Part shown: positions 3,055 through 34,529 of the stretch, piece by piece
How positions within the stretch are numbered: the first letter of the stretch is position 1
How the letters are laid out: the number at the start of each line of letters is the position of its first letter
Assembly: GCF_036365525.1 (NCBI RefSeq)
Contig: NC_090404.1
Coordinates: 12,924,550 to 12,988,549 of the forward strand
Origin: Heterodontus francisci
Taxonomy: Eukaryota
DNA length: 64,000 nucleotides
Direction of reading: 5' to 3'
Notes under the pieces: generated by a model
Seen by the model: the letters and a program-made list of their open reading frames with translations, nothing else
Database searches by the model: none
What the model was told of the DNA's origin: nothing
Translations under genes and position numbers: made by a program

Positions 3055-3106
3055 CGGCTGTGCTAGTCACGACGGCCCCGATCCATCCACAGCACCATAA
3101 GTGACC
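3055..3106 (-). pseudogene. NAR-TCR-type J segment, probable 1-nt frameshift
   Basis: 5' RSS AGTTCTTGT-23 nt-TATTGTG (3145-3107). Coding GGTCACTTATGGTGCTGTGGATGGATCGGGGCCGTCGTGACTAGCACAGCCG, then donor GTAAGA. The DGSG motif and the VVTSTA/phase-1 donor frame are offset by 1 nt. Confidence 0.8.
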
Positions 3107-3466
3107 CACAATAACACCGCTCCCGGTCAGCCCGATACAAGAACTACCGACACCTCAATCTGCCGGCCACACATCACAAGAGTACCGGCGCTACACAATT
3201 ATTCCAGGGGTCTTAGATCAATAAACAATATTTCATGTTTCACAGTCCCTGTCCGTTCAAGCTGTTCATTGTGAGACTCTGAGCTCTTCGTAAAATGGCC
3301 CAGGAACACATGCCGAAGATGGAAGCATCATAGAAATGGAGAAAAATGTCAGAAGGAGGAAATTACAATAAAACTAAACCAAATACAGCGTTACAATTCA
3401 GGACTGGGACCAGGGAATTTATATTTTAATTATACAGAGTTATTTGTTCAGGTCAGTAACACTGGG

Positions 3467-3479
3467 GCAATCCCAAACA
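3467..3479 (-). other. D segment of the NAR-TCR cassette (TGTTTGGGATTGC) flanked by 12/12 RSS
   Basis: V-side RSS CACAGTG(3480-3486)-12-ACAAATTGG(3499-3507). J-side RSS CCCAGTG(3466-3460, CAC mutated)-12-ACAAATAAC(3447-3439). Confidence 0.8.
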
Positions 3480-3864
3480 CACAGTGTTTGAAGTCAACAC
3501 AAATTGGTACTTGGTGAGGTGTAGGGTATCAGTTAAACGGCGTGGACTACGGTTCCCGGTTCTAGCCTTTACAGCAGGATCCCATTTGGTGTTAGGGAGT
3601 TGTAACTGGCATCAGTCATTCCCAATCGCCATTTACTGACATCAATCGCGGGAAAAACATCTTCATCCGCACGCACTCTGCCTCCATGAAACCAGGAATG
3701 TCAACGGCAATAATCCAATCCCATTATAAACTAGATAGTGGGGCAAAGGGTGCGAGGTGGAACTGTGGGCTTTAACTGCAGATTAATTCCGCTTTATCAT
3801 TTGTTTCTGTGATAATCTGCAGTGAGAGTTTTTCTATCGCGGGAAGCCGAGGCCCATCACTGTG

Positions 3865-4143
3865 TGTTTCTGTGCTCAACTTTACAGTAATAGGTGGCGG
3901 TGTCTTGAACTCTCACATCCCAAATTTCCAGCGAAAATGTCTTTTCTGCCGTAATCGTCCTCATATCAAATCGGTCTCGGCTGGAGATCCGCTCCCGCCG
4001 TGTCCCGGTCTGGGTTTGTCTGAAGAAATATCCATTCTCTTAAGTATAACCATAACCATAGTAAACACAAGTGATGGTGAGAGACTGACACGCCTTCCTG
4101 GTCACCGCTCCCGGGGTCTGTGTCACTGACTGACTGAAAGAGC
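3865..4143 (-). pseudogene. NAR-TCR (VNAR-like) V exon with in-frame stop
   Basis: Translates SFSQSVTQTPGAVTRKACQSLTITCVYYGYGYT*ENGYFFRQTQTGTRRERISSRDRFDMRTITAEKTFSLEIWDVRVQDTATYYCKVEHRN. VNAR hallmarks: QTP start, SLTI.C, CDR2 deleted, ERIS..R, YCK. It also has an extra FR1 Cys. TAA at 4042-4040. 3' RSS CACAGTG(3864-3858)-22-AGAAAAACT(3835-3827). Confidence 0.88.
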
Positions 4144-4291
4144 CTGGAAATTAAACAGAGAGAGTTTGATGGGCCATCAGAGCCGAACCACACAACGAGG
4201 CTCAAACCCCAGACAGTGTCTGTAATTCGGATGGACTCGGGCAGCTTTATATTAAATCCACACAATGTCGGTTTGTTTGATCGGTACTCAC

Positions 4292-4334
4292 GGGGTAAAC
4301 AGACACACAGGGTGAAAACAAGGAGGATTCCCAT
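4292..4334 (-). pseudogene. Leader exon of the NAR-TCR V (MGILLVFTLCVCLP)
   Basis: ATG at 4334, 43-nt hydrophobic exon, phase-1 donor GTGAGT, in frame with the V exon acceptor at 4144. Confidence 0.85.
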
Positions 4335-5904
4335 CGTTCTGCTGTCCGGAGCTGATGGTTTATATGACGGAGAGCTGGAGACTGCAGCCCTGGCTGCTCT
4401 GGGAGACTGGACCTCAGAGCTGGACTGAAATACTTTAGGGGTTCGAGTTGATTTGCAGAGGGCAGTGTCCCGGAGATCATTGATGGGCCGCACGTTTCCC
4501 AGGTTTCCGACTGTGTATTGTGTAAATACGTGACAAGGTTAAATCGGGAACCTGCAGTTTTCTGTCGTTTCATTGGGTCTGTGAGTCTAATGCGAAATTC
4601 CCTCCCACATTAGTCTGATGTACAGGGGGTGGGGCTGGGGGAGTTGTTCTGTCAGTAGAAGCTGCCGCCCTCCTTTCCCCCACAGTAATGAGCTGGGAGG
4701 TCGCTCCATGTGTTTTTATTGGGTGGTGTTTGTTGAGGGTGGAATGTGGGCCCAGGACACTGGGAGAATCCCCCATCCCCGCTCTTATTATAATAGTGCT
4801 GGGGATTCTTTAACATCTCCCTGAACGGGCTGGTGGGGCCTCGGTTAAACGTCTGATCTGAAGGACGGCGCCTCAGACCTGGCAGCTTCCCTCAGTCCAA
4901 CAACTGAGGGTCAGGTTACAATATCAGATAGTCCAGTGACATTGTCACAATCCAGGCAGATATACACAATATACACAAATAATAACCTCTCACTGTCATT
5001 TAAACACATGGTTCTTGCACACTCCCCTTCTGTGGCTAACAGTTAAAATGATGTTTCAATTCAGTAATGATTGATTTCCAGGTCTGTAATATTCAGAGTT
5101 TCCAGGTGCAGTGACAGAGAATAAAGCAGCATTCGGAAAGACCAATGGGCATTGAGGGAACTCTGTGCTTGGCTCTTGTTTTGAAGATTACTATCACTAC
5201 ATTGTGAAATCTGTTCATTGTGTATAAACTGTCTCTAAGCCAGCAACACACTTTGATCAATTAAACCCTGTGAACAGGCCGCGGTCCAAGGCTCTGGAAT
5301 CCTGGCAGGGAGGCAGGGGAAGGGCTACTCAGTGCAAAAGGTGACTTCAAAAGGTGCACAGCCCGATGCAAATATGGCCGATGGCTTAATCGACCTGACA
5401 GCACCGCCGGATGGCCTGCGGTAGGGTTCTAATCTTCACCCAGCAACCTAACTCTGTTTGATCTGAACATCTTTAAAGAGCACTCACAAACTGTCTACCA
5501 GATACATAATTGTCGCACCTCAAGCATTTTATTTTTATTCGTTTCATCCAATTGTCTTTTACTTTTGAAAGTTACTGCTGAATTTACTTCCACTGCCCTG
5601 TCAGGCATAACAACTCTTTGCATAAAAATGTTTTTCCTCATGTCTACATCAAAAAAATTGTATTTATGTAGAAGCTTTAACGTAGTGAAGGGTTCCATCT
5701 GCAGGTAGATGCAAAGATCTTCATGAAATGTGATTCCCGCAGAGGCCAATGATGATCAGATAACATTGAGAGTTTATTCGTATTATGTCTGTTCAGTTGT
5801 TTGTTCTGTAACAACAGATACCATCTAGTATGACGGATCTATAAATCACTCCGGCAATATACAGAATCGTCGTTAGTTCACGAGTCAACTGATCGGGAAG
5901 GAAA

Positions 5905-6184
5905 ATATCACGTGAGTCAGTTACCAGTGTGTTGATGGTGAAGCTACTGGAATTTGACAGAAAGAATTGACGCCAGAATAAACCATTACCAATCTCTCGT
6001 TTCCGGTTATCATAACCAGACAAGAATTTCAGACCCGCCCCACGTCTCTAACAGCGGAACCATTCCCCCGATAAGGCCAATGACTGTAGCCCAGTTCGGG
6101 GTGTTTCCATGCACCAGCAGCCAGTTCACCACCTACCGGTCTCACAGCATCACTGGGGACACAAGGAAGTGCGGTGAGAGCATC
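5905..6184 (-). pseudogene. Possible highly decayed TCR-type V exon
   Basis: Acceptor CTCAG at 6189-6185. Frames read PSDAVRPVGGE / C..(16 aa)..WFR.*RRGAGLKFLSGY....GNG.....SNSSSFTINTLVTDS. No YYC, RSS or leader found. Confidence 0.35.
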
Positions 6185-6268
6185 CTGAGACAGCAGATTA
6201 TTGAGGGTGGGGATTAGAACGGGTGTCTTCAAATATTCAACTCCCCTTCTATGGAGCGGACATCGACA

Positions 6269-6314
6269 ATGTGCCTACTCAGCATCTGGGTTGTGTGGGG
6301 GGCATTTCTGACAG
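6269..6314 (+). CDS. Leader exon of TCR alpha/delta V (MCLLSIWVVWGAFLT)
   Basis: 46-nt hydrophobic exon with phase-1 donor GTAATT. An in-frame upstream ATG is also present at 6251. Confidence 0.85.
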
Positions 6315-6431
6315 GTAATTGTGGACTAAACACATTTAATCTTTTCTCTCATTTCCCAAACACAGTTTAAATTTGAATTTCAAACAGTCTTCTGTCTGAT
6401 TTTTTCTCCCCTGTATCAACATGCTTTTCAG

Positions 6432-6738
6432 ATCGGATTCATGGAGATTCTGTCACTCAGCAGCTGTCCTCAGATGTTAAGACAGAAGGAGAAGCGGTGA
6501 CTTTAAGCTGTACCTATGATACTACAATGAGCGTCTATACATTGTACTGGTATCGGCAACACCCAGATGTGCAACTGGAGTTTATACTGGGGAAGGATTC
6601 TAATAACAATGAACATAAAGCAAATTTTGCTCACACCCGTTTCTCTGCTGGGCTCCAGACCATGACTAAATTCACCAGTTTAACCATCTTGGGGCTGCAA
6701 CTGATTGACGCTGCCGTGTATTACTGTGCCTTCAGACT
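6432..6738 (+). CDS. TCR alpha/delta-type V segment, intact and unrearranged
   Basis: DRIHG-DSVTQQLSSDVKTEGEAVTLSCTYDTTMSVYTLYWYRQHPDVQLEFIL...RFSAGLQ...SLTILGLQLIDAAVYYCAFRL, with canonical Cys/Trp/YYC and acceptor TTTTCAG. Confidence 0.93.
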
Positions 6739-6777
6739 CACACTGATGGAAAGTAGTCTCACCCCTGTACAAAAACT
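6739..6777 (+). promoter_or_regulatory. 23-RSS of TCR V
   Basis: CACACTG-23 nt-ACAAAAACT. Confidence 0.92.
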
Positions 6778-8459
6778 GCCTTTGGACTGTGGGTGGGAGC
6801 TCCTGTCTGTTGGGGGTTGTATAGAATGGCGGGCAGATGCAGCCACAATGTGCCGGGCGCTGTCAGCCGCTCAAACACACGCTGAGAGGAAACCAAATTA
6901 AACTCGGATCAAACTGTCACCCAACTGTTTCCAGGAGCAGCCGAGACAAAAAACAGTAGAATCCAATCGGCCAGACAGATCCAACATAGAATCGTATGTG
7001 GAGACGCCCGTCTAACCCCCACCCACAATAATCTGGCCCAGAAACACATTCTGATCAAATAAACGCTGTGAACAGGCTGTGTTCAAAGACTCCGGGAAAC
7101 TAACTGGGGAGATGGGGAAAGTGCTGCTCAATATTGCAGGCAGACAGGGAAAGGGCAGCAAAGGACAAAAGTAAGTTGAAGCGCCACAAGTGGATTTGCT
7201 GAATTTCAATTTTAGCATAAAAACGATTGAAATAAACTGACAGAATTGCACAAGAGGTTCTCACCTGGTCTTGTTGAGTGTTATGTGTTTTATTGTCTCT
7301 AAAGAAGGTCCCCGTGGCTCACACTGTCGAGGCTGAATTATTGCTTCTGTTTTTCAGTGTAACAGTGCATTCTGCTGCGCACTAGTGGGAACTCACAGTG
7401 GGCCGAGCAGGGGGGTGGGGAGGAGCGGGTGGAGGGCGCAGTTGGGCGGGGGTGTTGTATGGGCTCTGTTATATCTCAGTAGCAATGTGGAACTCATGCA
7501 CCAGATGGCCTGCAGCGGTTCAAGAAGGCAGCTCAGCACCACCTTCTCAAGGGCAATTAGGGATGGGCAATAAATGCCGACCTAGCTAGCGACGCCCACA
7601 TCCCATGAAGCAACAAAGAAACAAATGCACATTTCCTAGGAGCAGGATTGGCTGATCTGTCAGAACTGACGACAGTTGACCACCAATCAATGACAATTAC
7701 TTTCTCTGATGGTTTCGTTTTCTCTCTGAGACTTTCTCGGTGTATCTGTCTCTTCGTCTCGGTGTCTGTCTACCTGTCTCTGTCATTCGCTCTGCCACTC
7801 TCTTCGGTGTTCGATGAAAACATAGAGTTTAGAAAATCTAACTTTTTAACCAGAATCTCATTTCAACGAGTTCTCCACACAAAATAAAACAAAAGTGTTT
7901 CATTACTGCTCCATTAATAGTAGCAGTTAAGATGGATAAAAGATACAAACCGGAACTCAGGGAATAGTTGAAAATAGCAGCAGTTTCATATTATTAAAAT
8001 AATTAACAGAATATAATACAATATTAATAATTATATATTATATTAATATTATTAATAGAAAGGCAGAAGCAAATGAAACCTGCGAGCGGGGCTGCCGCAG
8101 ACTGTGTTGTAACAAGGAGTATCCACTTGTCAGGAACGGAATTAAATAATAATCGAGATTTCGAAAATTATACAACTCTGCCTTTCCATAGGAACTGCTG
8201 CACTTTCAAATTCATTACATATTGGGGAATACAGGCTTGGGGCAGAAGTATTGGGATAATAATATTATTCAGTAGTAAGCAAAATCTTCATACATGAAGT
8301 CGGTTTAAACCAGGGATAAATCTATGGGCAACTGGGTTGGATTGGTTCTGAATTAAGGTACAGAGAAGAAACAAAGGTTTCTGTAAATTAAAAACTAGAA
8401 AAGGGAAATGCATACAATTATGTGTAAAGCTTGGAGACAGGGTATAATAAGTAACATAA

Positions 8460-9230
8460 AAGCAAAATACTGCAGATGCAGGAAATCTGAAATAAAGACA
8501 AGAAATACTGGAAATACTCAGGAGGTCTGCCAGCATCTGTGGAGAGCGAAGCAGAGTTAACGTTTCAGGACAGTGACCTTTCATCAGAACTGACAAATGT
8601 TGGAAATGTAATAGGTTTTAAGCAAATAAAGCAGGGGTGGGGTTAAAGAGATAACAAAAGGGAAGGTATTGATAGGACAGAGGGTCACAGAGAATAACTG
8701 ACCAGAAGGTCATGGAGCAAAGGAAAACAGAGTGTTAATGGTGTGCTGAAAGACAAAGCGTTTGTGTAGAGAGGGTGTTAACTGACAGAAAAATTAACAG
8801 CCCTGGCCCAAAGCACAAACATGAAAAAACAATGGGTAGGCACATGGTAAAAAAAAATGATGCAACAATCTAAAATAAAATAAATAAAAAAGAAAAAAAC
8901 TATAAATAAAAAGAGGGGCCCGCCTTGCTCTGAAATTATTGAACTCAATGTTCAGTCTGGCAGGCTGTAGTGTGCCTAATCGGTAAATGAGATGCTTCCT
9001 CGAGCATATGTTGATGTTCACTGGAACACTGCAGCAAGCCCAGGACAGATATGTGAACATGAGAGCAGGGCTGTGTGTTGAAATGGCAAGCAACTGGAAG
9101 CTTGGGGTCATGCTTTCGGACTGAACAGAGGTGTTCCACAAAGCAGTCACCTAATCTGTGTTTGGTTTCCCTGAAGTAGAGGAGAACACATTGTGAGTAG
9201 CAAATACAGTGTACTAAAGTGATAGAAGTA
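8460..9230 (-). mobile_element. Penelope-like retroelement fragment (GIY-YIG endonuclease end)
   Basis: ORF 8945-9280 contains LLYFRETKHRLGDCFVEHLCSV...PVACHFN...H, a degenerate YIGETKRRL..RF.EH motif. Confidence 0.7.
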
Positions 9231-9760
9231 CACTCACAAATCGGCAAAATAATGGAAGGTGTCATTGACAATGCTATCAAGTGGCACTTAGCAATAAACT
9301 TCTCACCGTGCTCAGTTTGTACTGCAGCAGGAATGTGTCAGGGCCCAGAGCCTTTCCTGTATCCAGTGTCTTCAGCTGTTTCTGAACATCACGTGGAGAG
9401 AATTGAATTAGCTGAGGACAGGCATCTGTGATTCTGGGGACCTCAGGAGAAGGCTGAGATAAATCCTTCAATAAGCATCTGTGGCTGAAGATGGCTGCAG
9501 ATATTTCAGTCTTGTGTATTTTTTAGTCACGTACTGGGCTCCCCATCATTGTGGATGAGGATTTTTTGGAGCCTTCTCCTCTGGCTATTTAATTGTTCAG
9601 CACCATTAACGACTAGATGTAGCAGGACCGCAGAGCTTTCATCTGATCCGTTGTTTGTGGAATGGCTTAGCTCTATTATCGCAAGCTGCTTCCACTGTTT
9701 AACATGCATGTAATCCTGTGTCGTAGCTTCAACAGGTTGTCACCTTATTTTTAAATTTTT
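9230..9760. mobile_element. Decayed CR1-clade LINE fragments
   Basis: Peptides such as VQKQLKTLDTGKALGPD. Same family as the copies at 43-61 kb. Confidence 0.6.
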
Positions 9761-10094
9761 CGAGAGCCAGCTGGAAGGAGTTGGGTTTGGCAGTCGCAAA
9801 AGGCCCCTATCTGCGGCCTGGGCCATGCTGCACTCTGGGAGACCGGGCCACACATGCGCACATCCACGACCGGTTTAAACACGGCTTTTTATGTTCTCGC
9901 GCAGACCAAACTTTCACTTTTATAGGTTAATCTCGTGGGGTTATTTTGATGGAAACTGAGGTCAGCTTTTCTTTTAGTCGAGTTGTTCTTTTAAATAAAC
10001 GACAAACTTAAGCACTGTATGGTGTTCCACAAACTTGGGGACGCTGGTTTGCCTTGCATTGATTGACGCCACAATGCTTTCCTCAAGTCACATG

Positions 10095-10800
10095 ATTGTC
10101 AGATCCCTGGGGTGATGTTGAGTTCAGGGAGATGGTATCAGAGGAAATGGAGCAGGGAGAGAGAATCTTACTGGCGATGTTCAGTGAGTTCGTGGGGGGG
10201 GGGGGGGTAATCAGAGGGAATGGAGCAGGGAGAGAGGATCCTTGGGGATGTTCAGTGAGTTCTGGGAGATGGTATCAGAGGGAATGGAGCAGGGAGAGAG
10301 AATCCCTGGGGTGATGCTTAGCGAATTCCGGGAGAAGGTACCAGATGGAATGGAACACAGCAGAGAAAAACGTCATCAGGGAAACTAGTGACAGAGGAGC
10401 ACGGGTAACGGATATAGCAGAAAAAGTGGGGGCAGAAATTCGGCATGTGCATAACAGCAAATTGGAGTGCGTGTGACAGAGCAGGTGGAGACAGTGTGGC
10501 TTGTGTGTATAACAGAAAATGCAAAGATAGAATCTCAGCATCAGATAAGCCTCCGACTCCGGGAATCATTCCCAGTATGTTGCCTCTCCTTTGTCTGATA
10601 GACCCCAGGCTCTCGAAATCATCCCAGGAGTTGTGCTGCCTTTTTTGTCACATAACCTTCAGGCTTTGGAAAATCATTACCAGGGGTTGTCCTCTCTATT
10701 GCGTTAGCTGGGCCCCAGGCTGTGGGAATCATTCCAAGGGTTTGAGCTCCCTGCCTGTCAGATGGACCCCGGGCTCTTGGAATAATTTCCTGTATTTGTA
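10095..10800. repeat. Degenerate ~64-bp tandem repeat: 4 units at 10100-10370 plus older inverted units at 10555-10800
   Basis: Unit atccctggggtgatgtt..gagttc.gggagatggtatcagagggaatggagcagggagagaga. Confidence 0.7.
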
Positions 10801-11299
10801 CTCGATGACATACTGTGTCAGATATGCAACCCGTTTCTGGTTAGTTAGTGCATTTGTTGTTCAAGATTTATTAACAATTTCAAAAGGAACATTTTGCAGA
10901 GAAGTTTTTTTTACAAAAAGGAATGAATATGATAACTGCGTGTCACATTGAGAACAGAACACATGCGGCCTGAGCTGCCAGCTATCTGTAAAACTGTAAC
11001 AGACCAGTGAGAGAAAACAAGGGTTCAACATAAAGGGACGGAACCAATTGTGAATAAGGAATAGTTTCGTATTTACACATGAAGTTCAAACAAAGGTAAA
11101 ACTCGAAGATACATTTACATTCTCGCCACGATTATCTCATACATTTCAAACAGAAAAACGGAAACAATGTTTATGATTTTCTCAGCTACAGATTCGGAAC
11201 CATAAACTGAAGACATTTTACTTTTGGAGATTTTGTTTTCGTAGCATACAGATGTTAGAAATAGTTGAGAAAAATCCATGGCGGCTGAAGTTCAATCCA

Positions 11300-11308
11300 T
11301 CACTTGAC
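11300..11308 (-). CDS. IGHM: IgM TM2 exon (VK-stop)
   Basis: Acceptor TTTTACAG, then GTC AAG TGA. Candidate AATAAA at 10872-10867. Confidence 0.88.
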   Translation of the reverse strand, partial: VK

Positions 11309-11452
11309 CTGTAAAAGAGGGATAAAAGATTGAAGCAGAGATTTCATATCCTGAGACACTCATCAGAGTTTTTTTTTTAATCTATGAAACTTTTCGAGAT
11401 TTGTTAAACAGCTTCAGTCAAATTGAAGCATGAGTGGATTGAATATTCTCAC

Positions 11453-11580
11453 CTTCACCAGAGTGACTGCAGCACTGTAGAAAATGCTCAGGAAGAACAG
11501 GATGATGAATGTGGAAGCGGTTGTCCAGATGTTGCCGCTCTCTTCCTCATTATCATCAATCCAGATGTGGTCTGAGGAAT
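11453..11580 (-). CDS. IGHM: IgM TM1 exon
   Basis: DSSDHIWIDDNEEESGNIWTTASTFIILFFLSIFYSAAVTLVK, with the conserved antigen-receptor TM motif. TAG acceptor and GTGAG donor. Confidence 0.95.
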
Positions 11581-12084
11581 CTACAGGAATGTAGAGGAGA
11601 AGATATACTTAGATCATTAATTAGTCTAGGATATAAGATTGTTATTTTTCATTCGCACTTCTCTTCCTTAAGTTATTATTTTGTTCTCTAATTAATTTTT
11701 CAATTAATATCTATTGGTAACTTAACCACGTTGAGCATTCTATCTCTGATACTAATTCCAGAGCCGTTCTTCCTTTATGATCCTCGTTCAGGTAGTGTTG
11801 GAAAATATGTCCGTTTTTTGTTTCTTCCTTGTCAGACGCTATTTTATTTTGGATCAATTTCGTTCTACCATTAGGAATTAGGGTAAGAGATCGGATGTTC
11901 CAGAGAGAAGAGTTCCAATCTTGTTTGTTTATTTGTGATGAAAGTGATTGGCCATCATTAATTTATCTCAGCTGCTATGTGAGAACATTGCTTCATTTTG
12001 ATTACAGGTCAAATATGCATAATGGAAAGTGATTGAGAGGTTGTCTGTCAAAACGTGCATTTTGAATTCTGCTTTCGTCTATAG

Positions 12085-12980
12085 TCTGGTGTTTTTGTTT
12101 GTTCGCTATAGTGTTTGCGTGTGTGAGTATGAGTATCTCTTGCTTCACATTACTCTGTGTTTGTGTATCCATGCCTGAGTGTGCGCGAGTGTTAGTGAGT
12201 GTGTTTATTTGTTTGTTTGCGTTCCCAAGTGTGAGCGTATTAATGTGTTTGTTTATATGTTGACGGCTATGTGTATTTGCCCATATACGTTGAGGTGTGT
12301 CAATGTGCATTGCTGTGTGTATTTAACTGACCGTGTGTGTGTGTGTGTGTATGTGTGTGTGTGTGTGTGTGTGTGCGCGTGTGTGTATGTGTGTGAATTT
12401 TTGTTTATGTATATGTTTGTATCCCCATAACTTTGTTAATTTAAGTTTCTGTGTTGATGGGTGTGTTTTTGTCCCTGTTTGTTAATGTGTGCTTATGTGT
12501 CAATGTGTTTGTTTATGTGTATCTGTGCATATGTGTGTTTGTGCCCCATAAGTGTGATAATGCGTGTTCATGTGTTGATGTCGACATTTATGTATTATTT
12601 GTGATTATGTGTACATGTGTGCTAATGTATGTGTTTATGTGCATGTTTGTGTATCTATGTGTATGTCAGTATATTAATGTTGGTGTTTATGTGTGTATGA
12701 GCGTTAATGCGTCTATTTATCTATGTATTTGCGTGTGCGAGTCTGTTAAAGTGTGAGTATGTTCGTCCATGTATGTGCATTAATGTGTATCCTATTGTAT
12801 GATTTTATGTCTATGTTTCTGTGTACGTGAGACTGTACTAAGGTGTTTGTTTATGTTTATGTGTGTGACTGTGGGAACGTTTATACCAGTCTTTGGGTCT
12901 GTTCGTGTTTGTAGGTGAATGTGTGTGGTTGTGTATGTGACTGTGTTTATGTGTGTGTTTGTGTCCGTGTGCCTGTGCAT
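12085..12980. repeat. Degenerate (TG)n / GT-rich low-complexity tract
   Basis: Long TG-rich run with a near-perfect (TG)n at about 12334-12394. Confidence 0.9.
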
Positions 12981-13772
12981 TTTTATTATTTATCAATGTT
13001 CCAGAGAGAACCAATATCCCGGTCTGGCCTTGATAGTGTGCATTGTCGAGAATATTCTTCATCGTTCTGTGTATAAATGTATTCTATGCGAGATGCGTTA
13101 TAACATCAGTTGAATGCATCCAGGAATGCAACTGATGGGCCTCAGAAGTATCAGGAACACAAGCGCGAAGAAACATTAGAATTCAATTTGTCCCAATAAG
13201 ATTATCAGGCAAAAGGTTATATTGTACACATATTTTTACAATATGATTTCCATGTGGAAAGTTTAAACCTTCGCACAGTGAGCTAGAAGCTGACTTTGTA
13301 CTGATGGCAACTGAGTCCATGTAACAGAGACCAGTTGTCTTCTCATCTCAGTGTCGGGAGAATGGGAGTATAGTGGGTTAACAAATGCCCTTGCTCCTTT
13401 CACTGTTGGAGAAATTGGGGAGAGGTCTACAGTCGGTTCACCATTACCTTTGCCCTCTCTCTACTGGAGACGTGGAGTTACAATGGATTAAGAATTGCCC
13501 TTCCCTATCTCTGTTTCACGGGGGCACAGTGGGTTAATAAATTGTCCTTCGCCCTCTTTCTGATGGGAGATTGTGGTACATTTCATGTTCATATGTGGCC
13601 CTCACTTAAGCTTCCAGTAGGTGCGATGCTACAACTTAAAGCTGACCCCAATTCAGAATGGGTGGATAACACGGGAAGCAGGAACACCAAGATCCAAAAT
13701 GCATTGCACGTGCTTGTTAGAAAAGGGAAAAGGTTGCATGTTTAAGAATTTAAGTATTTGGAAGAAAACGTC

Positions 13773-13788
13773 TTTATTGGTTTTTATT
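13773..13788 (-). terminator. Two AATAAA polyadenylation signals for secreted mu
   Basis: tttatt on the plus strand at 13773-13778 and 13783-13788, 30-45 nt after the secretory stop. Confidence 0.8.
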
Positions 13789-13816: not shown

Positions 13817-14208
13817 TCATTGACATGAATTGACAGTGTCCAACAGTGCAAGGGAAATGTTCACAAAACTGGGTTTACCGCTCGATTTATTAACTGTTCT
13901 GTTGATGATCTTCAAGGGGATCGCTTCATGTCCCACCACACAGGAGTAAGAAGCGCCGCTGGCCCACTCCTCCGCTGCAATGGATAACAGGCTGTAGATG
14001 AAGTAGGAGCTATTGTCGTTCTCCGCCATCACCTCGGTGTTCTTGTAGTTGCCGGAATTCACCGACTTGTCATTGACGGTCCACTTGACGAATATCTCTC
14101 GGGGGGAGAAACCTCTCACTAAGCAGGTGAGGGAGAGGAACCTCTGAGCAGAGACTTCTTCTGCCGGGGGCAGGAGGACAGACACAGACGGTTCCCGCAG
14201 ATGTTTAA
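13817..14208 (-). CDS. IGHM: IgM Cmu4 plus secretory tail
   Basis: [43 protein letters not shown]...[43 protein letters not shown]. Tail has the NIS sequon and a penultimate Cys. Internal donor G|GTAAA at 13879/13878 for the membrane form. Confidence 0.97.
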
Positions 14209-19755: not shown

Positions 19756-20164
19756 CTGAGAAGGAATGTCAGAGTTAAAATGTTAGAATCTGTGAACCAT
19801 GCTTACAAAATAACGAGAGAAGTCGAAGTTTGACTACAGTTATAATCTAATTCCAACGTTTTCCGATAAATGCCTTCTTTTTCTGAGTTGAAAGAGATGA
19901 AGTGAATGGTCTTCATGTAACTCCAGTCTTGTACATCAGGGAAGGCACGAGTCTGAAAGAGGCATTCTTTCCCTGAGGCCCGTAATAAGGACTGAATGTC
20001 CAATAATGTATCCTGTACTTCCTCCAGCTCTTGATCCCTTGTTGAGGAACCCTGCTCTCATTCTCCAACCACTTTCACACTAGGTTGCTCCACATTTAAT
20101 CCACTGATCTCCTCGCTATATCCTTTTGCTGTCAACATCCTATTATCAACATAAAACTGGACCA

Positions 20165-21543
20165 TTCAGTCTTATGTCGGTGGTGGGCAAATTATTGGAG
20201 AGGATTCTGAGAGACAGGATTTATGATTATTTGGAAAAGCATAGTTTGATTAGAGATAGTCAGCATGGCTTTGTGAGGGGCAGGTCATGCCTCACAAGCC
20301 TTATTGAATTCTTTGAGGATGTGACAAAACACATTGATGAAGGAAGAGCAGTGGATGTGGTGTATATGGATTTTAGCAAGGCGTTTGATAAGGTTCCCCA
20401 TGGTAGGCTCATTCAGAAAGTAAGGAGGCATGGGATACAGGGAAATTTGGCTGCCTGGATACAGAATTGGCTGGTCCATAGAAGACAGAGGGTGGTAGTA
20501 GATGGAAAATATTCAGCCTGGAGCTCTGTGACCAGTGGTGTTCCGCAGGGATCTGTTCTGGGACCTCTGCTCTTTGTGATTTTTATAAATGACTTGGATG
20601 AGGAAGTGGAAGGCTGGGTTAGTAAGTTTGCCGATGACACAAAGGTTTCTGGAGTTGTGGATAGTGTGGAGGGCTGTTGTAGGTTGCAACAGGACATTGA
20701 CAGGATGCAGAGCTGGGCTGAGAAGTGGCACATGGAGTTCAACCTGGAGAAGTGTGAAGTGATTCATTTTGGAAGGTAGAATTTGAATGCAGAATACAGG
20801 CTTAAAGACAGGATTCTTGGCAGTGTTGAGGAACAGAGGGATCTTGGGGTCCACGTCCATAGATCCCTCAAAGTTGCCACCCAAGTTGATAGGGTTGTTA
20901 AGAAGGCGTATGGTATGTTGGCTTTCATTAACAGGGGGATTGAGTTTAAGAGACGCAAGGTTATGCTGCAGCTCTATAAAGCCCTGGTTAGACCACACTT
21001 GCAATATTGTGTTCAGTTCTGGTCGGATGTGGAAGGAAGGATGTGGAAGCTTTAGAGAGGGTGCAGAGGAGATTTACCAGGATGCTGCCTGGACTGGAGG
21101 GCATGTCTGATGAAGAAAGGTTGAGGGAGCTAGGGCTTTTCTCATTGGAGCGAAGAAGGATGAGAGGTGACTTGATAGAGGGGTACAAGATGATGAGAGG
21201 CATAGATAGAGTGGATAGCCAGAGACTTTTTCCCAGGGCGGAAAGGGCTATCACCAGGGGGCATAATTTTAAGTTGATTGGAGGAATGTTTAGGGGAGAT
21301 GTCAGAGGTAGGTTCTTTACACAGAGAGTGGTGGGTGCGTGGAATGCACTGCCAACGGTGGTAGTAGAAGCAGATACATTAGGGACATTTAAGCGACTCT
21401 TAGATAGGTACATGGATGATAGTAGAATGAAGGGTATGTAGGTAGTTTGATCTTCGAGTAGGTTAAAGGGTCGGCACAACATCGTTTGCCGAAGGGCCTG
21501 TACTGTGCTGTACTGTTCTTTGTTCTATGTTCTATGTTCTATT
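20165..21543 (+). mobile_element. Young 5'-truncated CR1-type LINE (RT and C-terminus) in the J-C intron
   Basis: ORFs 20126-20779 ([23 protein letters not shown]), 20783-21055 and 21007-21441. 3' tail (tgttcta)n. Confidence 0.92.
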
Positions 21544-24125: not shown

Positions 24126-24359
24126 CTCTAAATAGTTAATATTGCCATTCCTTAAATATCATAAATCAATTGGCTGTCGGCAGAGTCAATGAATGGAAGG
24201 GCAAAAATTATTTGAGTAGAATTCGGCTTGGGCAGTGGCACAAAGTGAGCACTCATTGGCCACCCATTATCCACGGTGCTGCATATTCAGTTCCATTGCA
24301 GGCAACGGAATGCAGGCCTGGTGCTATAGGATTAGAGAATTTCAAATGCTACACCCTTG

Positions 24360-25610
24360 TTAACAAGAAGTAGGTAAAGATAAACCGAAACCTTCTGTCA
24401 GTCAGTTTAACCTTAATGATGGGAAAACTTTTAGAAACGGTAATCCGGGAAAAACAGTCCCTGGGCAAATGTCAATTACTTAAGGAAAACCAGGACGTAT
24501 TTATTCAATGCAAAAATCTTGTTGAACTAATTTAGTAACGTTTTTAATGAAGTAACTGATCGGGTTGATGACAGCAATGTGGTTGATATGATATACCTGG
24601 ATTTCCAAAAGGTACTTGATAAAGTGCCACATAACAGGCTTTTCAGCAAAGTTGAATCCCACTGAATTAATGGCAATGGCAGCATGAATACGTATTTGGC
24701 TGAGTGACAGGAAACAGAGAGTAGTGGTGAATCGTCGCTTTTCAGACTGGAGTGGGGTTCCCAGGGGTCAGTGCTAGGAGCTCTGCTTTTCTTAATCTAT
24801 ATTGACGACCTATACTTGGATGTGCAAGCCATAATTTCAAAATTTGCAGGTGACACAAAACTTGGAAGTATTGTGAACTGTGAGGTCGATAGTGATAGAC
24901 TTCAAGAGGATATAGACAGTCTGATGGAATGGGCGACAAGTGGCGGATAAAATTTCAGAAAAATGCAGAGAATTATGAAGTTTTGGTAGGAAGAACGAGG
25001 AGATGCAATATAAAATAATGGATACAATTCGAAAGCGGGTGTAGGAGCAGAGGAACTTGGGGGTATCTGTGTATAATTCATTGAAGGTGGCAGGACAGGT
25101 TGAAAATGTGGTTAATATAGCATTTGGGATCCTGGGCTTTATAAATAGAGGCATAGAGTACAAAAGCAAGAAAGTGAGATTGAATCTTTATAAAACACTG
25201 TTTGAGCCTCTACTGGAGTGTTGCGATCAATTCTGAGCACCATACTTTAGGAAGGTTGTGAAGGCATTGGATAGAGTGCAGAAAAGATTCACAAGAATGG
25301 TTCCAGAAATGAGGAATTTCGGTGATGTAAATATATTTGTGAAGCAGGGGCTTCTCTTTAGAGAAGAGTAAGATGAGAGGGGATTTGATAGAGGTGTTCA
25401 AAACCATAAGGCGACTGGATAGAATAAATGGAGAGAAATTGTTTCCGTTGGTGGCAGGGTCAAGTACCGGATGAAACTGATTTAAGGTAATTGGCAAAAG
25501 AACCCGAGGCGACAGGAGGAAAAAAATTATGTAGCGAGTTGTTAAGATCTGGAATACGCTGCCTGCGACTGTGTGGAAGCAGATTCAATCGTGGCTTTCA
25601 AAAATAAATT
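24360..25610 (+). mobile_element. CR1-type LINE, decayed
   Basis: Nucleotide similarity to 20165-21543 across the RT and C-terminal region. Confidence 0.8.
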
Positions 25611-25624
25611 GGATAATTATATAC

Positions 25625-27080
25625 GAACATACATACAAACATACGAATAAGAATCAGGAGTAGGTCACTCGGCCCTTCGAGCCTGTTTCGCCATTCAATA
25701 AGTTCATAGCTGAACTGATTGCTCCACATTTCCACCGATCCCAGATAACCTTCCACCCCCTTGCTTATCAAGTATCTATCTAATTCTGCCTTAAATATAT
25801 TCAAAGACTCGGCTTCCACCGCCTTTTGAGGAACAGAATTACAAAGACTCACGACCCTATGAGAGAACAAAATCTCCTCATCTCTGTCTTAAATGGGCGA
25901 CCCCTTATCTTTAAACAGTGAGCCTTAGTTCTAGGTTCTCCCACAAGGGAAAACAACCTTCCCATATCCACCCTGTCAGGACCCATCAGCATCTTATATG
26001 TTTCAAACACGTCGCCTCTTACTCTTCTAAATTCCAGTGGATACAAGCTTAGCCTGTCCAATCATTTCTCGTAAGACAGCCCGCCTATTCCAGGTATTAG
26101 TCTAGTAAATCTTCTCTGTGCTGCCTCCAACGCATTTACATTCTTCCTTAAATAAGGAGACCAGTACTGTACGCAGTATTCCAGATGTGGTTTCACCAAT
26201 GCCCTGTATAACTGAAGCATAACCTGCCAACTTTTGTATTCAATTCCCCTCGCGATAAACAATAACATTCTATTGGCTTTCCTAATTACTTGCTGTACCT
26301 GCATACTAACCTTTTGCATTTCATGCACGAGGACACCCAGATCCCTCTGTATCTTAGAGCTCTGCAATCTCTCACCATTAAGATAATATGCTTCTTTCTT
26401 ATTCTTCCTGCCAAAGTGGGCAATTTCACACTTTCCCACATTATACTCCATTTGCCAGGTCTTTGCCCACTCATTTAACCTATCTGTATCCCTTTGTAGC
26501 TCCTTTATGTCCTCCTCACTTTCCTATCTATCTTTGTGTCATCAGCACATTTAGCAATCATGCAAAAAGCTGAGGCCACAGCACAGATCCCTGTGACACA
26601 CCACTCGTTACATCTTGCCAACCAGAAAATGACCCATTTATGCCTACACTCTGTTTCCTGTTAGCTATCCAATCTTCTATCCATGCCAATATGTTACCCC
26701 CACACCATGAACTTTTATTTTCTGCAATAACCTTTGACGTGGCACCTTATCAAGTTCCTTCTGGAAATCTAAGTACAATACATCCATCGGTTCCCCTTTA
26801 TCCACAGCACATGTAACTCCCTCAAAGAACTCCAATAAATTGTTCAAACATGATTTCCCTTTCACAAAACCATGTTGGCTCTGCCTGATTACCTTGATTT
26901 TTTTCTAAATGCCCTGCTATAATGTCTTTAATAATAGCTTCTAACATTTTCCCTAAGACAGATGTTAAGCTAACTGGCCTGTAGTTTCCTCCTTTCTGTC
27001 TCCATCCCTTTTTGAATAAAGGAGATACATTCGCTATTTTCCAACCTAATGGAACCTTCCCTGAATCTAGGAACATATTC
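25625..27080 (-). mobile_element. CR1-type LINE
   Basis: ORFs 26822-27154 (NYRPVSLTSV), 26677-26865 and 26062-26451 (PHLEYCVQYWSPY). Tail (gtat)n. Confidence 0.85.
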
Positions 27081-28129
27081 AAAATTGTGAGAACTTTTAA
27101 TAGAGGAGCAAGTAGGGAGAAGCTGTTTCCTCTGCCAAGCAATTCAAAGGCCACAGATTTAACATAATAGGCAAACGAACTGGAGCGGAAATTAAATTAA
27201 AATTTTGATATTGAGGGATGTTAAGTTCGGGAACGCACCAGGTAACCGGATATATACGTGAAGGGGACTACTTTGCAGGGTTACGAGAAAAATGCTGGGG
27301 TTTAGGACTTAATCAGACAGCTCTATTAAAGCCCGCACAGGCACGACAGGCCGAATTACTTCCTACTGTGCGGTAAGATTCGATGATTCTACTCGACTCA
27401 ATGAAATTAATTCTTCAAGATTTCCTTCTAGAAGGGAAGGAAATTATTCATAATTTTGAACATCTCTATCAAACTTGTTTTTATTGTTTGTTCTTAATGA
27501 AAGAAGATTTTAAAATCAAGGGATCTGAGGAATTTGAACAAATGTTAGATTCGCATCACTACAGAGCCCTAAAGAACGTTGTGAATGCAGACCCATTGTA
27601 GGTTGACTGTCTGTCTTTAAATGTTTCACAGAGATGTAGTTGTGACTTTGTGCCTTATGTTGTGACCCAGTCCAATAACAACTCACTCGAGATTGTCCCT
27701 GCATGTTACTATTTTTTTAAAATGAACAAAATAATGGTTTTAAACATAAGGTTCCCATGATGGTTATTGGAGCGGGAGACTACACATTCTCTATTTAAAT
27801 TTTCAGAACTTAAATTGTCAAAATAACTACCAGTCTCCCATCAGATCAGAACTGGCGCTATTCTCTGGACCGTGACATTCACTTCCTGAAACTGTTTGTT
27901 CTGAAGTTGCGCTCAGTATCAGCCCACTCTGATTCAATAATTACCTGATATTCAAAAAGACTAAAGAATTAAAATGTGTGAAGATACGTTATCAGGAAGA
28001 ATGTCAAAATCAATTAATGCCCCTTGTTTCATTTGGCCTGTGGAAAAGTTTATTTTTATGTATCTGCCTAGAGGACTCGCAGTTTATTGGTTAGATTCAG
28101 ATTAATCTGCATTTTCTGCATTACCTGCC

Positions 28130-29240
28130 TGTCAAATCAGGTACATAAAGCACAGTAAAACTCCATTTACACGGCCCTGTGAGGCGCTGCGAGTCAGGTA
28201 CAGCAAGAGTTGATACCGTTCGCACTGCCGGGTCAGACTCAACACGAGTTCAATGGAAAATATAGTTCCCTATGAACTGCCCAGTTAAATATTCACGGTT
28301 CACATACATCAAAAATTAGACATAGAGTAAAACTCCTTCTACACTGGCCGATCAAGGACTATGAGGCCAGGTTATACTCCGTTTAGATACAGAGTATCGA
28401 TCGGATGAAAAACTAGCAGCTTGAGTACAACACAGGCTGGATACATTATAAACATCCCGATAAAATGCCCCCGCAGATTCTTCCAAGTTCGTTATACCAC
28501 AATTATATACATAGTAACGTTTCCTCCACACTGACTCATCAAATTCCGCCAGCTCACCTACTGCACCAATTAGATACAGGATAAATGTATATAGAGCTTG
28601 TCCATCAAACTTACCGCTCTCGTGAAGAACAAATTACATACACAGTGAAAAATCTCCCGCTACACTATCACTTCCAACATTACTAGGGCAGGTACAACAC
28701 GAATTATATACAGAGTCAAACATCGTCTACGCTGGTCAATCAAACACTCCTCGGTCATGCACACCATGGGTTAGACATACAGTTATGCTGCCTCCAGATG
28801 ATACCATCAAGCATTCCAAGGGAAGGTGCAGCAGGGATTAGATACAGAGTAAATCTCCACCCAACTAAATCATCAAAATAACTTCTGGCTTCCATCATAT
28901 CAGAGCAGGCAATGTTTTCTGCATTGTTACCGTTACTTTCTGAAGCTGCTTTGGAAGTGAGCTGAGGATCAGGTCAATCTCATTCAATAATCGTCTGATA
29001 TTCAAAATGTTGAACCTTCATCAAAAATTGGGATTTTTTTTATAGAAAGAAGTTTAATCTCAATTTATGATTTGCTGTTTCATCAAAGCAATGGAACTAT
29101 TTATATATAATCGGGCTCCAGACCTTGCACCTTATTAGTTGGATGAAGCTTAAGGTTCTTTAAACACTGCAGGATAAAAACACTCTCAGGTTAGATACAA
29201 GATAGATAAGTTAGAATAAAGCTCCCTCTGTACTGTCTTT
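28130..29240. repeat. Degenerate ~65-bp satellite (ttagatacagagtaaagctccctctacactgtcccatcaaacactcccagggcaggtacagca)
   Basis: More than 10 diverged units. A better-conserved array of the same unit lies at 55860-56410. Confidence 0.75.
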
Positions 29241-32200
29241 TCATTGCGCTTTAACGTTAGATGTAACAAGAGGTGTAAACTCCGTCTACACTATATTATT
29301 CCTATATATTCCTTCGACAGTACTTTTCAAACCCGCGACCTCTACCATCTAGAAGGATAAGGGCAGCAGATGCATGGGAACACCACCACCTGCAAGTTCC
29401 ATCCAAGCCACACAACATCCTGACTTGGAACGAAATCGCTATTCCTTCACTGTCACGGGGTCAAAATCCTGGAACTCGCTTCCTAACAGCAAGGACTGGA
29501 GCGGTTCAAGAAGGTAGCTCACCACCACCTTCTCAAGGGCAATTAGGGATGGGCAATGAATGCTGGCCTTGCCAGCAATGTGCACATCCCACGAAAGAAT
29601 AAAAAAAACTTCACTTTACGCGGGCCCATCAAACGTCCCCTGGTCAGTTACAGCATGGGCACTGAATAGATTAACGATCCTTCGACACTCTGCCTGTACT
29701 GCTACTGAACTGTTCCTTCTAAATGCCACACACTGGGTTACCGGTGGCATTCCTGAGGTGCATCCTTAAACTTAAAGTCAAAGTTATACCTTTCTCACAA
29801 ATACAAGCTTCTTAAATAAATGGGTCAAACTTCACTCCTTGAAATTCAGGAGAACGAACCAGAAGGTTTAAAACCAATCAGAAGGACTGCTGATTCTCAC
29901 ACAGAGAGCAGGCGCACACAAAGAGAACAGCCACAAACGATGCAACAATCGTGTTCACAGCAGATAGATCTTGTTCAGACTGTCAATTTCAATTAAACCA
30001 ATGTTAATCGATCTCTAATCAATTTATGACCACGTCAACTCTGTACATGCTTCGAAATTAAACTATTAGTTTGAAAATCTCTCTTCGACTTCCAACAATT
30101 GCTCCCTCTCTGTCTACAATCTTCTGAACCCTGTAAGCTTTAGTTTTCCTGAAAACAACTATATCGAGATAATTTCCAGTCGAGGTTCATTTGCTGCTTG
30201 TGACATGGGTCTCAGTGACAGAATACGAATTCATCAAACCAGGAAAGACTTACATTGAAAGGGATTACCCACTGGTTTGGTATATTTCACAATTAAATGT
30301 AACCTATAAAATAATCGAGGCTATGCATGAGATAATAATTTAAAATCTGCGACTACACCTTATTGAGTTGAGCACAGCTGAGTAAGAAAATTTATTGTTT
30401 TCTCAATTAATTTTTGACACAATTAAATATTCTCTGCAATCTGAGATTTTGCACCAACTGTAATCCTGACCAATGCACAACGCAATGGTGGGAGGCCATT
30501 TATATTTAATGAATGAATACTGTATTATATTATAGTGTAAGTTAATATTGATGTTAGCTAATGTATACTCTATTATAATAAAATGAGTTAATAGTGCTTC
30601 GAGACTTGAATCTTACTAGTAGCTTGTGACATATTAGTGTTTCAACCATATTAATATGACACGTTATTAATACTAAATCAAAAACTTCATGTTAATAGAT
30701 CAATACTTTCAAATATATTAATTTTACTTAACTTAAAAACATTTCAATGCTTTAAAAATCATTAGTGACTTCTAATAATGCGATGCTCTCTCTGGACACA
30801 CATGTAAACTTTGTATGTTTCTGACTACTCTGATATAACACAAACTCTGTCTATTCTCAGAGTATATTTCACATGATGGATTTAGGAAAGGACGATGACA
30901 AACTGTTCCAAGTTTAGTCAGGAAGGCATCTGCGTTACGAACGCAGGACGGTAGCATTATGTGTTAACTAAAGCAGGATTCTTGATTTTAACGGTTGCCC
31001 TAAATTGTACAAATGGCCGGGCAGTTTGCGGTCAGTGGCAGAGCCTCCACTATTTAATGGTAGATAAAATATGTTGCAATTTATTCCAGTAATGTTTGAA
31101 CTACAAGCGACAATACCTGTCAGTCTGATCCTGCAACCTGTTACCTGTTAAAGATCAGTTTACTGATAACTGTCCCACTATCTAACAACAAGCAACGTTG
31201 AAAGAACAATATGGTTTCGGCTGCACAATATTAATTTCATAACCCGACAGAAATATGAAATTTACAAAATGAAATTTACAACTCGGATTCAATTGATGAT
31301 TAAATATAATCCGTCATTCTTCTGCATAGAACAGGGCGAAAACAATAAATTAAAAGCGCATCATTAAAATTAATACTGCAGCGAATCAGTATGTTTTAAT
31401 TAAAATAATTTCAGGCATAATCAGAAATTATTGCCAGTCTCTAAATGTTTCCGTTCGCATTAATTGTGCCAGTGCACTGCAGAATTGTGGAAGGCCAATA
31501 TTGTTTAATAAATTAATATTGATACTATTGCATATTTTATTAATATTGGGAGATATCACGGTATTCTAATCGTTTGAGCTATATTAGCCTAACTACCCAT
31601 CAACCTGCAAACTCGATAAATATTTAATTTGTAATTACAGTAAAATTATACGTTTTAAATATAAGCATCCTTATCTATAGATTAATAGTTGTACCTACAA
31701 ATATCACTAAAATAAAAATATTTTCTAAAGTCTCTTTAAACGATATTTGATGTTCAAAACCTGCCTGCTTTCTGCTTACAATCTTATTTTAGACAGTTTT
31801 AATCACTTATAATGTTTGCATTCGATCATAAAACCTGCAGCCGCTTGATCTCACTGAGATTAAATATCGTAGAAACTCTGAACATTTTCACAAACTTTAG
31901 ATATTCAAAGTAAGCCAGGCACACACTCTCCTCGGCAGGCAAACACTAAATCGCATCAGTGAGTAGCTGAATCCCACAGCACAACGTTTTGTGGAACGGA
32001 ATTTTAATTCTCTAAAGGCCTTCAGCAGAATCAAATATAACACTGAAAAAAAAACCTCAATACATATTCCATCGAAGCTGCCAGTCACTGAATGAACTAT
32101 TTATTATGTAAGTATAAATTTAAAATAATGTGAGCAGAATTTAGCAGACAAAACATATTTAATAATTTAACGTTGAAACTATAGCATATTTAGTAATATT

Positions 32201-32805
32201 GGGTGATATTACTAAAGTATAATAAGTGAAATTATATTAATTTAAATCTGAGCAATGCTGAAAATGTGTTAATTATGCAGTTCTTAGTTACAGTAACAGT
32301 TCATGTATTATATATGAGCGTTCATAAGCATTAGATTAAAGATAACAATTTAATTATTACGAATAAAAATAGATTAAAGTATCGTAATGATATTTTGATG
32401 GCTAAAGCTTTCTGCCCACAATCCTATTTGAAACATATTTTAGCACTTAATGTTTGTATTCGTTCAGAAAAGCTGTGGCAACAAAATATCACCGAGATTC
32501 AACAATGTGGAAATGCCAAACTGCTTAACAACATTTCGGTATTTAAAGTAACACAGGCACACAGACTCATCAGCAGATAAACACCAAATCACATAAAACA
32601 GGCACTGAATCCCTCAGTAGCATCGTTTGTAGAGAAACAGCTGTATTCTCTAATCCCTTTGCACCACAATCAAATGAAACATTGCAAACAATTTCAATAT
32701 AAAATCAACCGAACCCACGTTTCAGTTAATCAATGAATGGCTAAAATAAGAGAAATATAGAATAAAGACACAAATAAAACCTTTACTGAATGAGCTGTTT
32801 CTTAC

Positions 32806-32853
32806 CTGCAGTCACCGTCACCATGGTCCCTTGTCCCCAGTAGTCCATGATGT
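32806..32853 (-). CDS. IGHJ: JH segment (IMDYWGQGTMVTVTA)
   Basis: WGxG motif and donor GTAAG. RSS heptamer 32854-32860 (CACAGTG), 23-nt spacer, nonamer ACAATAACC at 32884-32892. Confidence 0.97.
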
Positions 32854-33234
32854 CACAGTGTTACATTCCCTGGGCTGGGTCACACAATAACCGGCTTTGC
32901 ACAGAATAGAGAGAAATCCAACATTAGTTTAAATGTTGCTAAATCAGAGGCAAAGTAAAGCCACGATGGATCTTCATTAAAATATAAGTGTGTTAATGGT
33001 ATTTTTCAATGTTTATAAATGATCCTGACGTTTTATATTGCATCGGGTAATCCATGAACATGCTATCGAAATCAGCAATGGTGAATTAATAATTATCATA
33101 ATTCATCCATATTAAACTGTGCTAGAAGCAAATGCTACTTTATTGCATATACAGCTGGATTGTAAAAGCGAGCAAGGACCCAGATTCAATCAATTAGTGC
33201 AGAGGGACTTTTTGTATTGACAGTAACTGCTGTG

Positions 33235-33247
33235 CCACCCAGTATAA
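33235..33247 (-). other. DH2 segment (TTATACTGGGTGG); V-side 22-RSS, J-side 12-RSS
   Basis: V-side CACGGTA(33248-54)-22-ACAAAAACC(33277-85). J-side CACAGCA(33234-28)-12-ACAAAAAGT(33215-07). Confidence 0.93.
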
Positions 33248-33627
33248 CACGGTACTGTACAGAGCGAGTTTCTTATACAAAAACCCCAGACAGCGGATGT
33301 GCTCAAACCTACGATCTCTACCACGGCAGGAACTTCGAAGGAAATGAGTCTTAAATTGAAGTAATTGCTAGAAGTATTAGAGATTTGTAAAAATGTATAA
33401 AATTCTTCTGGTTTGTAAGTGTTGACTGACATGCAAAATCTGGACAGATACTTTTAAGAGTATTTCAATCTCCTTTGCACATATAATGACCAGTGTGAAC
33501 TGAAATGTCTCACTGATGCACACTTAGGGTAGTCGGAATCAGGTTTCTGAGAACTCTGTGGAATTTAATCTCTGTGTTTTACAGTTAATAGTCCACCTCA
33601 GTATTTGACACGGTGTGTCTCACTGTG

Positions 33628-33644
33628 ATACCCACTGTAGTACC
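33628..33644 (-). other. DH1 segment (GGTACTACAGTGGGTAT); 12-RSS on both sides
   Basis: V-side CACTGTG(33645-51)-12-ACAAATACT(33664-72). J-side CACAGTG(33627-21)-12-TCAAATACT(33608-00). Confidence 0.93.
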
Positions 33645-34019
33645 CACTGTGACACGAACCCGCACAAATACTCTTTCATTGCCATTGTCAGAATAAAATC
33701 GCTCAGTCAACAGAAGGTTTTGCAGATTTTGATTATCCATCTATGAGTTTTTCCTCAGAATGGCGGATTTGGACTAAAATTGGCCCCCATTGATAGAATA
33801 TCAACGATTTCATTGACTCCCTTTTCGCCAATGCTGGGCACTGCAAGCAGTACCCGCGGGTCCTTATCCTTATTAGCTTGGTTAATGTGAATTTTATTTT
33901 AACCTATTTATTGCTGTATCAAATACATCCTTCTAGTCTAAGTTAAAAACATCTCAATGTATATCATACCATTACTGACCGTTAGCTTTGGACGGGATGT
34001 GCTGCAAATTTTATCACTC

Positions 34020-34058
34020 TGTTTCTGTACGAGCCCAGGATTTGCTTGGGTCGCAGTG
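34020..34058 (-). promoter_or_regulatory. 23-RSS of VH
   Basis: CACTGCG-23 nt-ACAGAAACA. Confidence 0.9.
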
Positions 34059-34361
34059 GGTCTCTTGCACAGTAATACATGGCGGTGTCTTCGGATCTCA
34101 GACTTTTGATCTCAATATAGGTTGTGGAAGAGGCTCTGGAAGGAATGATTCGACCTTGGACTCCAGGCGCGTAATAGATGGTATCCGATGGTTTTCTGTA
34201 AGCAAGGAGCCACTCCAGCCCCTTCCCTGGAGCTTGCTTAACCCAGTGCACATAGTAGCTGTCCAGACTGAATCCGCTCACGGAGCAGGAAAGCTTGTGA
34301 GATTCTCCGGGCTTTTTCGTCACCGAAGCTGACTGGGTCAGCACAATATCGGACCGGACAT
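34059..34361 (-). CDS. IGHV: VH exon, intact, IgW-like sequence
   Basis: YVRS-DIVLTQSASVTKKPGESHKLSCSVSGFSLDSYYVHWVKQAPGKGLEWLLAYRKPSDTIYYAPGVQGRIIPSRASSTTYIEIKSLRSEDTAMYYCARD. CAG acceptor at 34364-34362. Confidence 0.96.
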
Positions 34362-34483
34362 CTGTCAGTTGAATGAAACAAATATCATCACATTAGATAA
34401 CATTCAAATCAATAAATAGAAATAAAAACACAATATCTGAAGCAGACTTCTGTTGTGTGACTAAACCGGTCAGGAATACTCAC

Positions 34484-34529
34484 AGGTGAAGCAAGCCAGC
34501 AGCACACAGAGGCACGGGGCAAGTCCCAT
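34484..34529 (-). CDS. IGHV: VH leader exon (MGLAPCLCVLLACFT)
   Basis: ATG at 34529, 46 nt, phase-1 donor GTGAGT, in frame with the V exon. Confidence 0.93.

Follow-up and report, generated by a model that had tools for sequence, protein, structure and literature searches.

The window analyzed here is a gap-free 64-kb stretch of the Heterodontus francisci genome (assembly GCF_036365525.1, contig NC_090404.1, positions 12,924,550 to 12,988,549; N count 0; numbered below from its first letter), and it holds a complete immunoglobulin M (IgM) heavy chain gene in germline form beside variable (V) elements of T-cell-receptor (TCR) type. Heterodontus francisci is the species in which shark IgM clusters were first described. 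The unrearranged IgM minicluster runs on the minus strand from 34529 to 11300 and comprises a split leader, VH, two diversity segments (D1 and D2), JH, four constant exons (Cmu1–4), a secretory tail and two transmembrane exons (TM1 and TM2). Past its 3' end stand an intact TCR alpha/delta-type V and a V-D-J cassette of the NAR type. A motif scan in six frames over the entire window found three V segments, one in each of these units, no TCR D, J or C, and no immunoglobulin or TCR motifs between 35 and 64 kb. Database comparisons were run exon by exon, and the joined gene model was translated solely in a script for counting stops.

Anatomy of the IgM minicluster

All exons of the cluster are open, its splice sites and recombination signal sequences (RSSs) are proper, and no exon, splice site or RSS shows a visible defect. 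A first-pass annotation, made from the letters of the window, had claimed an intact cluster of just this composition, and every element was found where that annotation had put it. Leader exon 1 (34529–34484, ATG at 34529, GT donor at 34483) is in frame with the V exon across an intron of 122 bp (34483–34362), and transcript contigs splice 34484 to 34361 exactly. The VH exon (34361–34059) carries the end of the leader and reads from framework region (FR) 1 to YYCARD; it matches the Pfam V-set domain (6e-13), and its PDB matches are antibody VH domains.

An RSS scan places the VH 23-RSS at 34058–34020 (CACTGCG, a 23-bp spacer and ACAGAAACA). D1 (33644–33628; 33600–33672 with its RSSs) has 12-bp spacers on both sides, and D2 (33247–33235; 33207–33285 with its RSSs) has a 22-bp spacer on its 5' side and a 12-bp spacer on its 3' side. 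JH (32853–32806) ends in MDYWGQGTMVTVTA, is in frame, is preceded by a consensus 23-RSS (32854–32892) and is followed by a GT donor at 32805. This geometry (V 23; D1 12/12; D2 22/12; J 23) permits V-D1-D2-J joining under the 12/23 rule. The same spacer layout at 33207–33672 also allows direct joining of D1 to J and forbids that of V to D2. In the customary depiction of the classical horn shark cluster, D1 has 12/22 spacers and D2 has 12/12.

Cmu1 (19755–19456; Pfam C1-set, 5e-12; AG/GT boundaries), Cmu2 (18740–18429; C1-set, 4e-18) and Cmu3 (15015–14707; C1-set, 1e-8) are all in frame. They are followed by an exon (14208–13817; C1-set, 1e-22) that combines Cmu4 with the secretory tailpiece, ends in NSCQ and a stop, and holds an internal donor for the membrane form at 13879. 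Residues 3–128 of this exon align with human IgM Cmu4-tailpiece chains, and the tailpiece is of the mu type, with a penultimate cysteine. TM1 (11580–11453) has an open frame with a hydrophobic stretch between an AG acceptor and a GT donor, and TM2 (11308–11300), the sole candidate found behind a pyrimidine tract and AG acceptor, adds Val-Lys-stop in frame. When J and Cmu exons are joined in the script, the secreted form comes to 453 residues and the membrane form to 478, each with a single terminal stop.

The cluster owes its length of 23.2 kb to fragments of long interspersed nuclear elements (LINEs) that encode reverse transcriptase and lie in the 13-kb intron between J and Cmu1. One such fragment (RVT_1, 4e-32) occupies 20126–20776 of this intron, and further reverse-transcriptase-like open reading frames adjoin it. 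Elsewhere in the window, a minus-strand frame of 649 residues at 40416–42365 (RVT_1, 3e-33), the one long frame scanned between 35 and 64 kb, appears to be an intact part of a LINE ORF2. The intron between Cmu4 and TM1 carries a (GT)31 microsatellite at 12333–12395 within a wider TG/CA-rich stretch, and a 66-bp tandem repeat (2.2 copies, 10210–10354) lies downstream of the IgM gene. The promoter octamer ATGCAAAT occurs three times in the window, where 4.3 occurrences would be expected, and never near the VH promoter.

The VH is set apart by its relatives. The protein closest to it is a V of Scyliorhinus torazame (83% identical, with a similar leader), followed by the Heterodontus 'IgW heavy chain V region W26' (68%), and no Heterodontus IgM VH occurs among the 120 best matches. 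By sequence, the leader and VH are IgW-like, yet the D-D-J-Cmu backbone that follows is that of IgM. The V may be a member of the 'monotypic second gene family' mentioned by Hinds-Frey et al. 1993 (PMC2191167).

Transcription of the VH type

A run search returned four DNA runs that contain 98% of the V-to-J stretch. Four further runs from the same sample, the assembled individual, were taken by guess to be RNA and were aligned with 32000–34800 at a likeness of at least 97%. The expression data consist of short contigs (runs X5, X6, X7 and X12) whose length is too small to tie V to J, Cmu or TCR delta.

Within these bounds, the V type is transcribed. Two contigs, one of 192 nucleotides (X5, depth 2,124) and one of 205 nucleotides (X12), start in the 5' untranslated region (34573 and 34585) and run through the leader into V at 100% identity, with the leader intron (34483–34362) removed. 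Because this intron has been spliced out, the runs do contain RNA and the V type is spliced. Exact matches in several contigs cover the 5' untranslated region with the leader (34484–34585) and the complementarity-determining regions CDR1 and CDR2.

The depth of the contigs speaks to the state of the transcribed V. Exact contigs in the V body have a depth of about 1,900–4,900 (X5). In the same run, a contig that passes from V into the germline RSS flank has a depth of about 19, roughly 100-fold below the V body, which implies that nearly all V transcripts are no longer in germline configuration.

Two contigs deserve separate mention. One low-depth contig (X5, depth 19) spans the germline spacer between V and D1 minus 48 nucleotides (33813–33860), which could reflect an indel between alleles or a copy in a paralogous cluster. 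In an X6 contig, the FR3 end of another VH (ending in GACACCGCGATATATTACTGTGC) is joined to the D1 region at 33649 and continues as germline sequence; it resembles the transcript of a V-D1 joint left partial, whether in a paralogous cluster or through joining between clusters.

Neighboring TCR-type V and NAR-type cassette

The first neighbor is a TCR alpha/delta-type V on the plus strand, with leader at 6269–6314, V exon at 6432–6738 and 23-RSS at 6739–6777 (CACACTG and ACAAAAACT). It is open and intact and carries a V-set domain; among single domains in the PDB it is most like TCR alpha and delta chains, and its nearest proteins are unnamed V domains of bamboo shark and elephant shark. From the IgM TM2 stop to the end of this RSS we measured 4.5 kb, the distance given in the first-pass annotation. 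Because the TCR V is on the plus strand, it is convergent with the IgM gene, tail to tail.

The second neighbor is the NAR-type cassette, whose leader ATG lies 7.0 kb from the IgM TM2. Its V (leader 4334–4292, V exon 4143–3865, 22-RSS 3864–3827) is short and has no CDR2 strands, and both V pieces match shark VNAR domains almost full length (these being the best full-length PDB matches). The frame is broken by a TAA at 4042–4040, in phase with both the leader and YYC, which makes this V a pseudogene; two relatives that are 71–72% identical (P0131 and P0132) have F or L at that position. The D (3479–3467; 3439–3507 with its RSSs) has a 5' 12-RSS with the heptamer CACTGTG and a 3' 12-RSS whose heptamer, CCCAGTG, is off consensus at the second position. 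The J (3106–3056), which reads GWIGAVVTSTA at its end, has a 23-RSS at 3107–3145 and a GT donor at 3055 and is devoid of the usual G-x-G motif. All of these elements are on the minus strand.

A relaxed RSS scan of 3050–3900 found a single D-like element with paired RSSs. IgNAR has three D segments, and the single D makes the cassette a better fit to NAR-TCR. A supporting V-delta was sought on the minus strand in positions 1–3050, the 3 kb that the window extends past J, and no V-like frame or V motif was found there; one open reading frame below the J resembles, by eye, the reverse-transcriptase-derived frames of the window and has no Pfam match. The plus-strand TCR V was considered as a supporting V and rejected, as it comes with a split leader of its own and stands upstream of the NAR V, on the opposite strand.

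Taken together, the stop in V, the off-consensus D heptamer and the lack of a supporting V-delta in the remaining 3 kb suggest that the cassette is dead, and by its sequence it looks like an inactive, decaying relic. Apart from the single TAA (within 4037–4048), the V keeps its family stretches (ECQSLTITC-like, FFRQTQTG and DTATYYC), as in the two intact relatives, so that inactivation looks recent. The NAR-TCR V-D-J cassette that had been annotated about 7 kb from the IgM gene stands as to distance and shared strand, but it is probably not a working unit.

Origin of the juxtaposition and comparison with known systems

Flajnik et al. (Sci Adv 2025; PMC12227049) report that IgM, IgW and IgNAR miniclusters show linkage to TCR alpha/delta within an antigen-receptor complex (AgRC), where TCR-type V exons stand between the clusters and V segments of NAR-TCR share the region with the immunoglobulin heavy chain (IgH) miniclusters. 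The main text of that paper does not name Heterodontus. We consider it likely that the window shows an ordinary, self-contained IgM cluster within such a complex, beside a TCR V that is intact and convergent and the relic of a NAR-TCR cassette. The window would then be one piece of an elasmobranch region in which IgH miniclusters are interspersed with TCR alpha/delta-type V and NAR-TCR cassettes. V, with its 23-RSS, would join D1 (12/12), D1 would join D2 (22/12) and D2 would join JH (23); the resulting VDJ exon would be spliced to its own Cmu1–4, with the choice between a secreted and a membrane ending set at the donor inside Cmu4. The D, J and C partners of the TCR V would lie outside the window. 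We infer that this particular copy rearranges within its own cluster and that the juxtaposition came about by regional duplication and shuffling, rather than as a device for using one V in two receptors. Occasional long-range joining of the VH to a TCR-delta D, of the kind reported in nurse shark, may nonetheless occur.

Several observations weigh against this reading. The RNA nature of the runs was guessed, although the spliced leader argues for it. Hundreds of V-(N/D)-J joints in the same runs connect 34060–34067 to 32845, with J spliced to a Cmu1 start; we rejected them as proof of rearrangement in this cluster, given that V contributes no more than 22–29 nucleotides to each joint and that the end of FR3 is shared with abundant VH genes. 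The last 27 or so nucleotides of FR3 reach a depth of about 62,700, against 2,800–4,900 in the V body, and a loose end at 34092 runs on into another FR3, both of which indicate that this FR3 end is common to other, more abundant VH genes. Most of the listed V-J joints come from other clusters. The loose end from J to Cmu1 likewise differs by 2 nucleotides from the Cmu1 of this cluster, which starts CCCCCCACCCTC, whereas the dominant transcript has CCCCCAACCCTT. No contig ties this V to this J or Cmu. An X7 contig is mismatched at 1 of 127 nucleotides, its junction does not resemble the local D1 and J, and part of the VH expression could come from a paralogue. Finally, both the stop codon in the NAR V and contiguity across 6.8–11.3 kb are as read from the assembly.

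The alternative that fares best, which we nevertheless regard as unlikely, is that the VH serves two receptors: besides its role in IgM, it would use its 23-RSS for deletional joining in cis with 12-RSS D segments on its left, those of TCR delta or the NAR D, and so give VH–TCR-delta chains in T cells. Joining of IgM and IgW V to TCR-delta D is reported in nurse shark, and IgH–TCR proximity has been offered as the reason for it and for VH–TCR-delta chimeras (PMC12227049; the nurse shark chimeras are also cited in PMC5931798), so that the idea of such joining in cis is already in print. The V type is transcribed, and the only 12-RSS D left of the VH inside the window, the NAR D, is on the same strand and has a 5' 12-RSS with a perfect CACTGTG that is compatible with the V 23-RSS. 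The first-pass annotation had proposed joining to this very D, at 3467; strand and RSS do allow it, but the cassette is broken and the product would probably be no usable chain. Nor does the window contain a TCR-delta D, J or C: the claim that an antibody gene shares the TCR locus holds insofar as a whole gene stands among TCR-type V elements. A V-to-TCR joint appears in no contig, though the contigs are too short to show one readily.

In a bolder form, a shade less likely again, IgM clusters with this IgW-like VH would be a special subset placed in the field of TCR V segments and would be the germline source of shark VH–TCR-delta chimeras, through cis joining over megabases. If this were true, the B and T lineages would each select the same V of the germline.

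It is improbable that the cluster, though intact in sequence, is silent and that a nearly identical paralogue is the source of the matching RNA. The X7 contig with its foreign junction fits such a source, but identity is 100% in several contigs, which take in the 5' untranslated region, leader, CDR1 and CDR2, and the exons, splice sites and RSSs are free of visible defects. Least credible of all is an assembly artefact that wrongly joined the IgM cluster to the TCR and NAR segments within 6.8–11.3 kb, for although immunoglobulin loci are known trouble spots of long-read assemblies (PMC12090573) and this interval is non-coding and includes the tandem repeat at 10210–10354, the window is free of N and of gaps, the interval has no long repeat, and the same kind of neighborhood has been reported in four other species (PMC12227049).

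Returning to the reading of an ordinary cluster in a mixed region, its practical yield is one expressed VH type that can be named and traced in thymus and spleen repertoires for a cis origin of VH–TCR-delta chimeras. Among the known systems, TAILV is a lone IgH-like V that is used with TCR delta and has no D-J-C of its own. The likeness here is an IgH-type V among TCR alpha/delta V; the difference is that this V heads a complete D1-D2-JH-Cmu cluster. With NAR-TCR, the doubly rearranging TCR delta (Criscitiello et al. 2006, cited in PMC12227049), the cassette shares a short NAR V with a split leader and a 22/23-RSS, together with a single D flanked by 12-bp spacers and a J that is followed by its splice donor, closely spaced on one strand. 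It departs from NAR-TCR in the in-frame stop of its V, the CCCAGTG heptamer and the J without G-x-G, and no leaderless supporting V-delta is seen in the 3 kb up to the window's end.

The classical Heterodontus IgM minicluster, for which Hinds-Frey et al. 1993 (PMC2191167) give VH-D1-D2-JH-Cmu over about 18–20 kb, is built of the same parts, with two D, four Cmu exons, a tailpiece and two TM exons arranged in this same order, and rearrangement is likewise expected within the cluster. The present copy differs in its length of 23.2 kb, in a V outside the large VH family and in its D spacers (D1 12/12, D2 22/12).

The closest counterpart is the AgRC itself (PMC12227049). One of its marks is an IgH minicluster with TCR alpha/delta-type V exons beside it, which is what we find here; another is a place on the chromosome that bears the TCR alpha/delta D, J and C genes and PSMB5. 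This window adds spacing at base resolution, an IgW-like V on an IgM backbone and an adjacent NAR cassette that is broken. Such mixing of immunoglobulin and TCR genes appeared in print in 2025 for other sharks, and ours is a further example of that known arrangement: it gives, for Heterodontus and at base level, the published picture of IgH clusters and TCR alpha/delta V in one chromosome region, and it leaves that picture unchanged.

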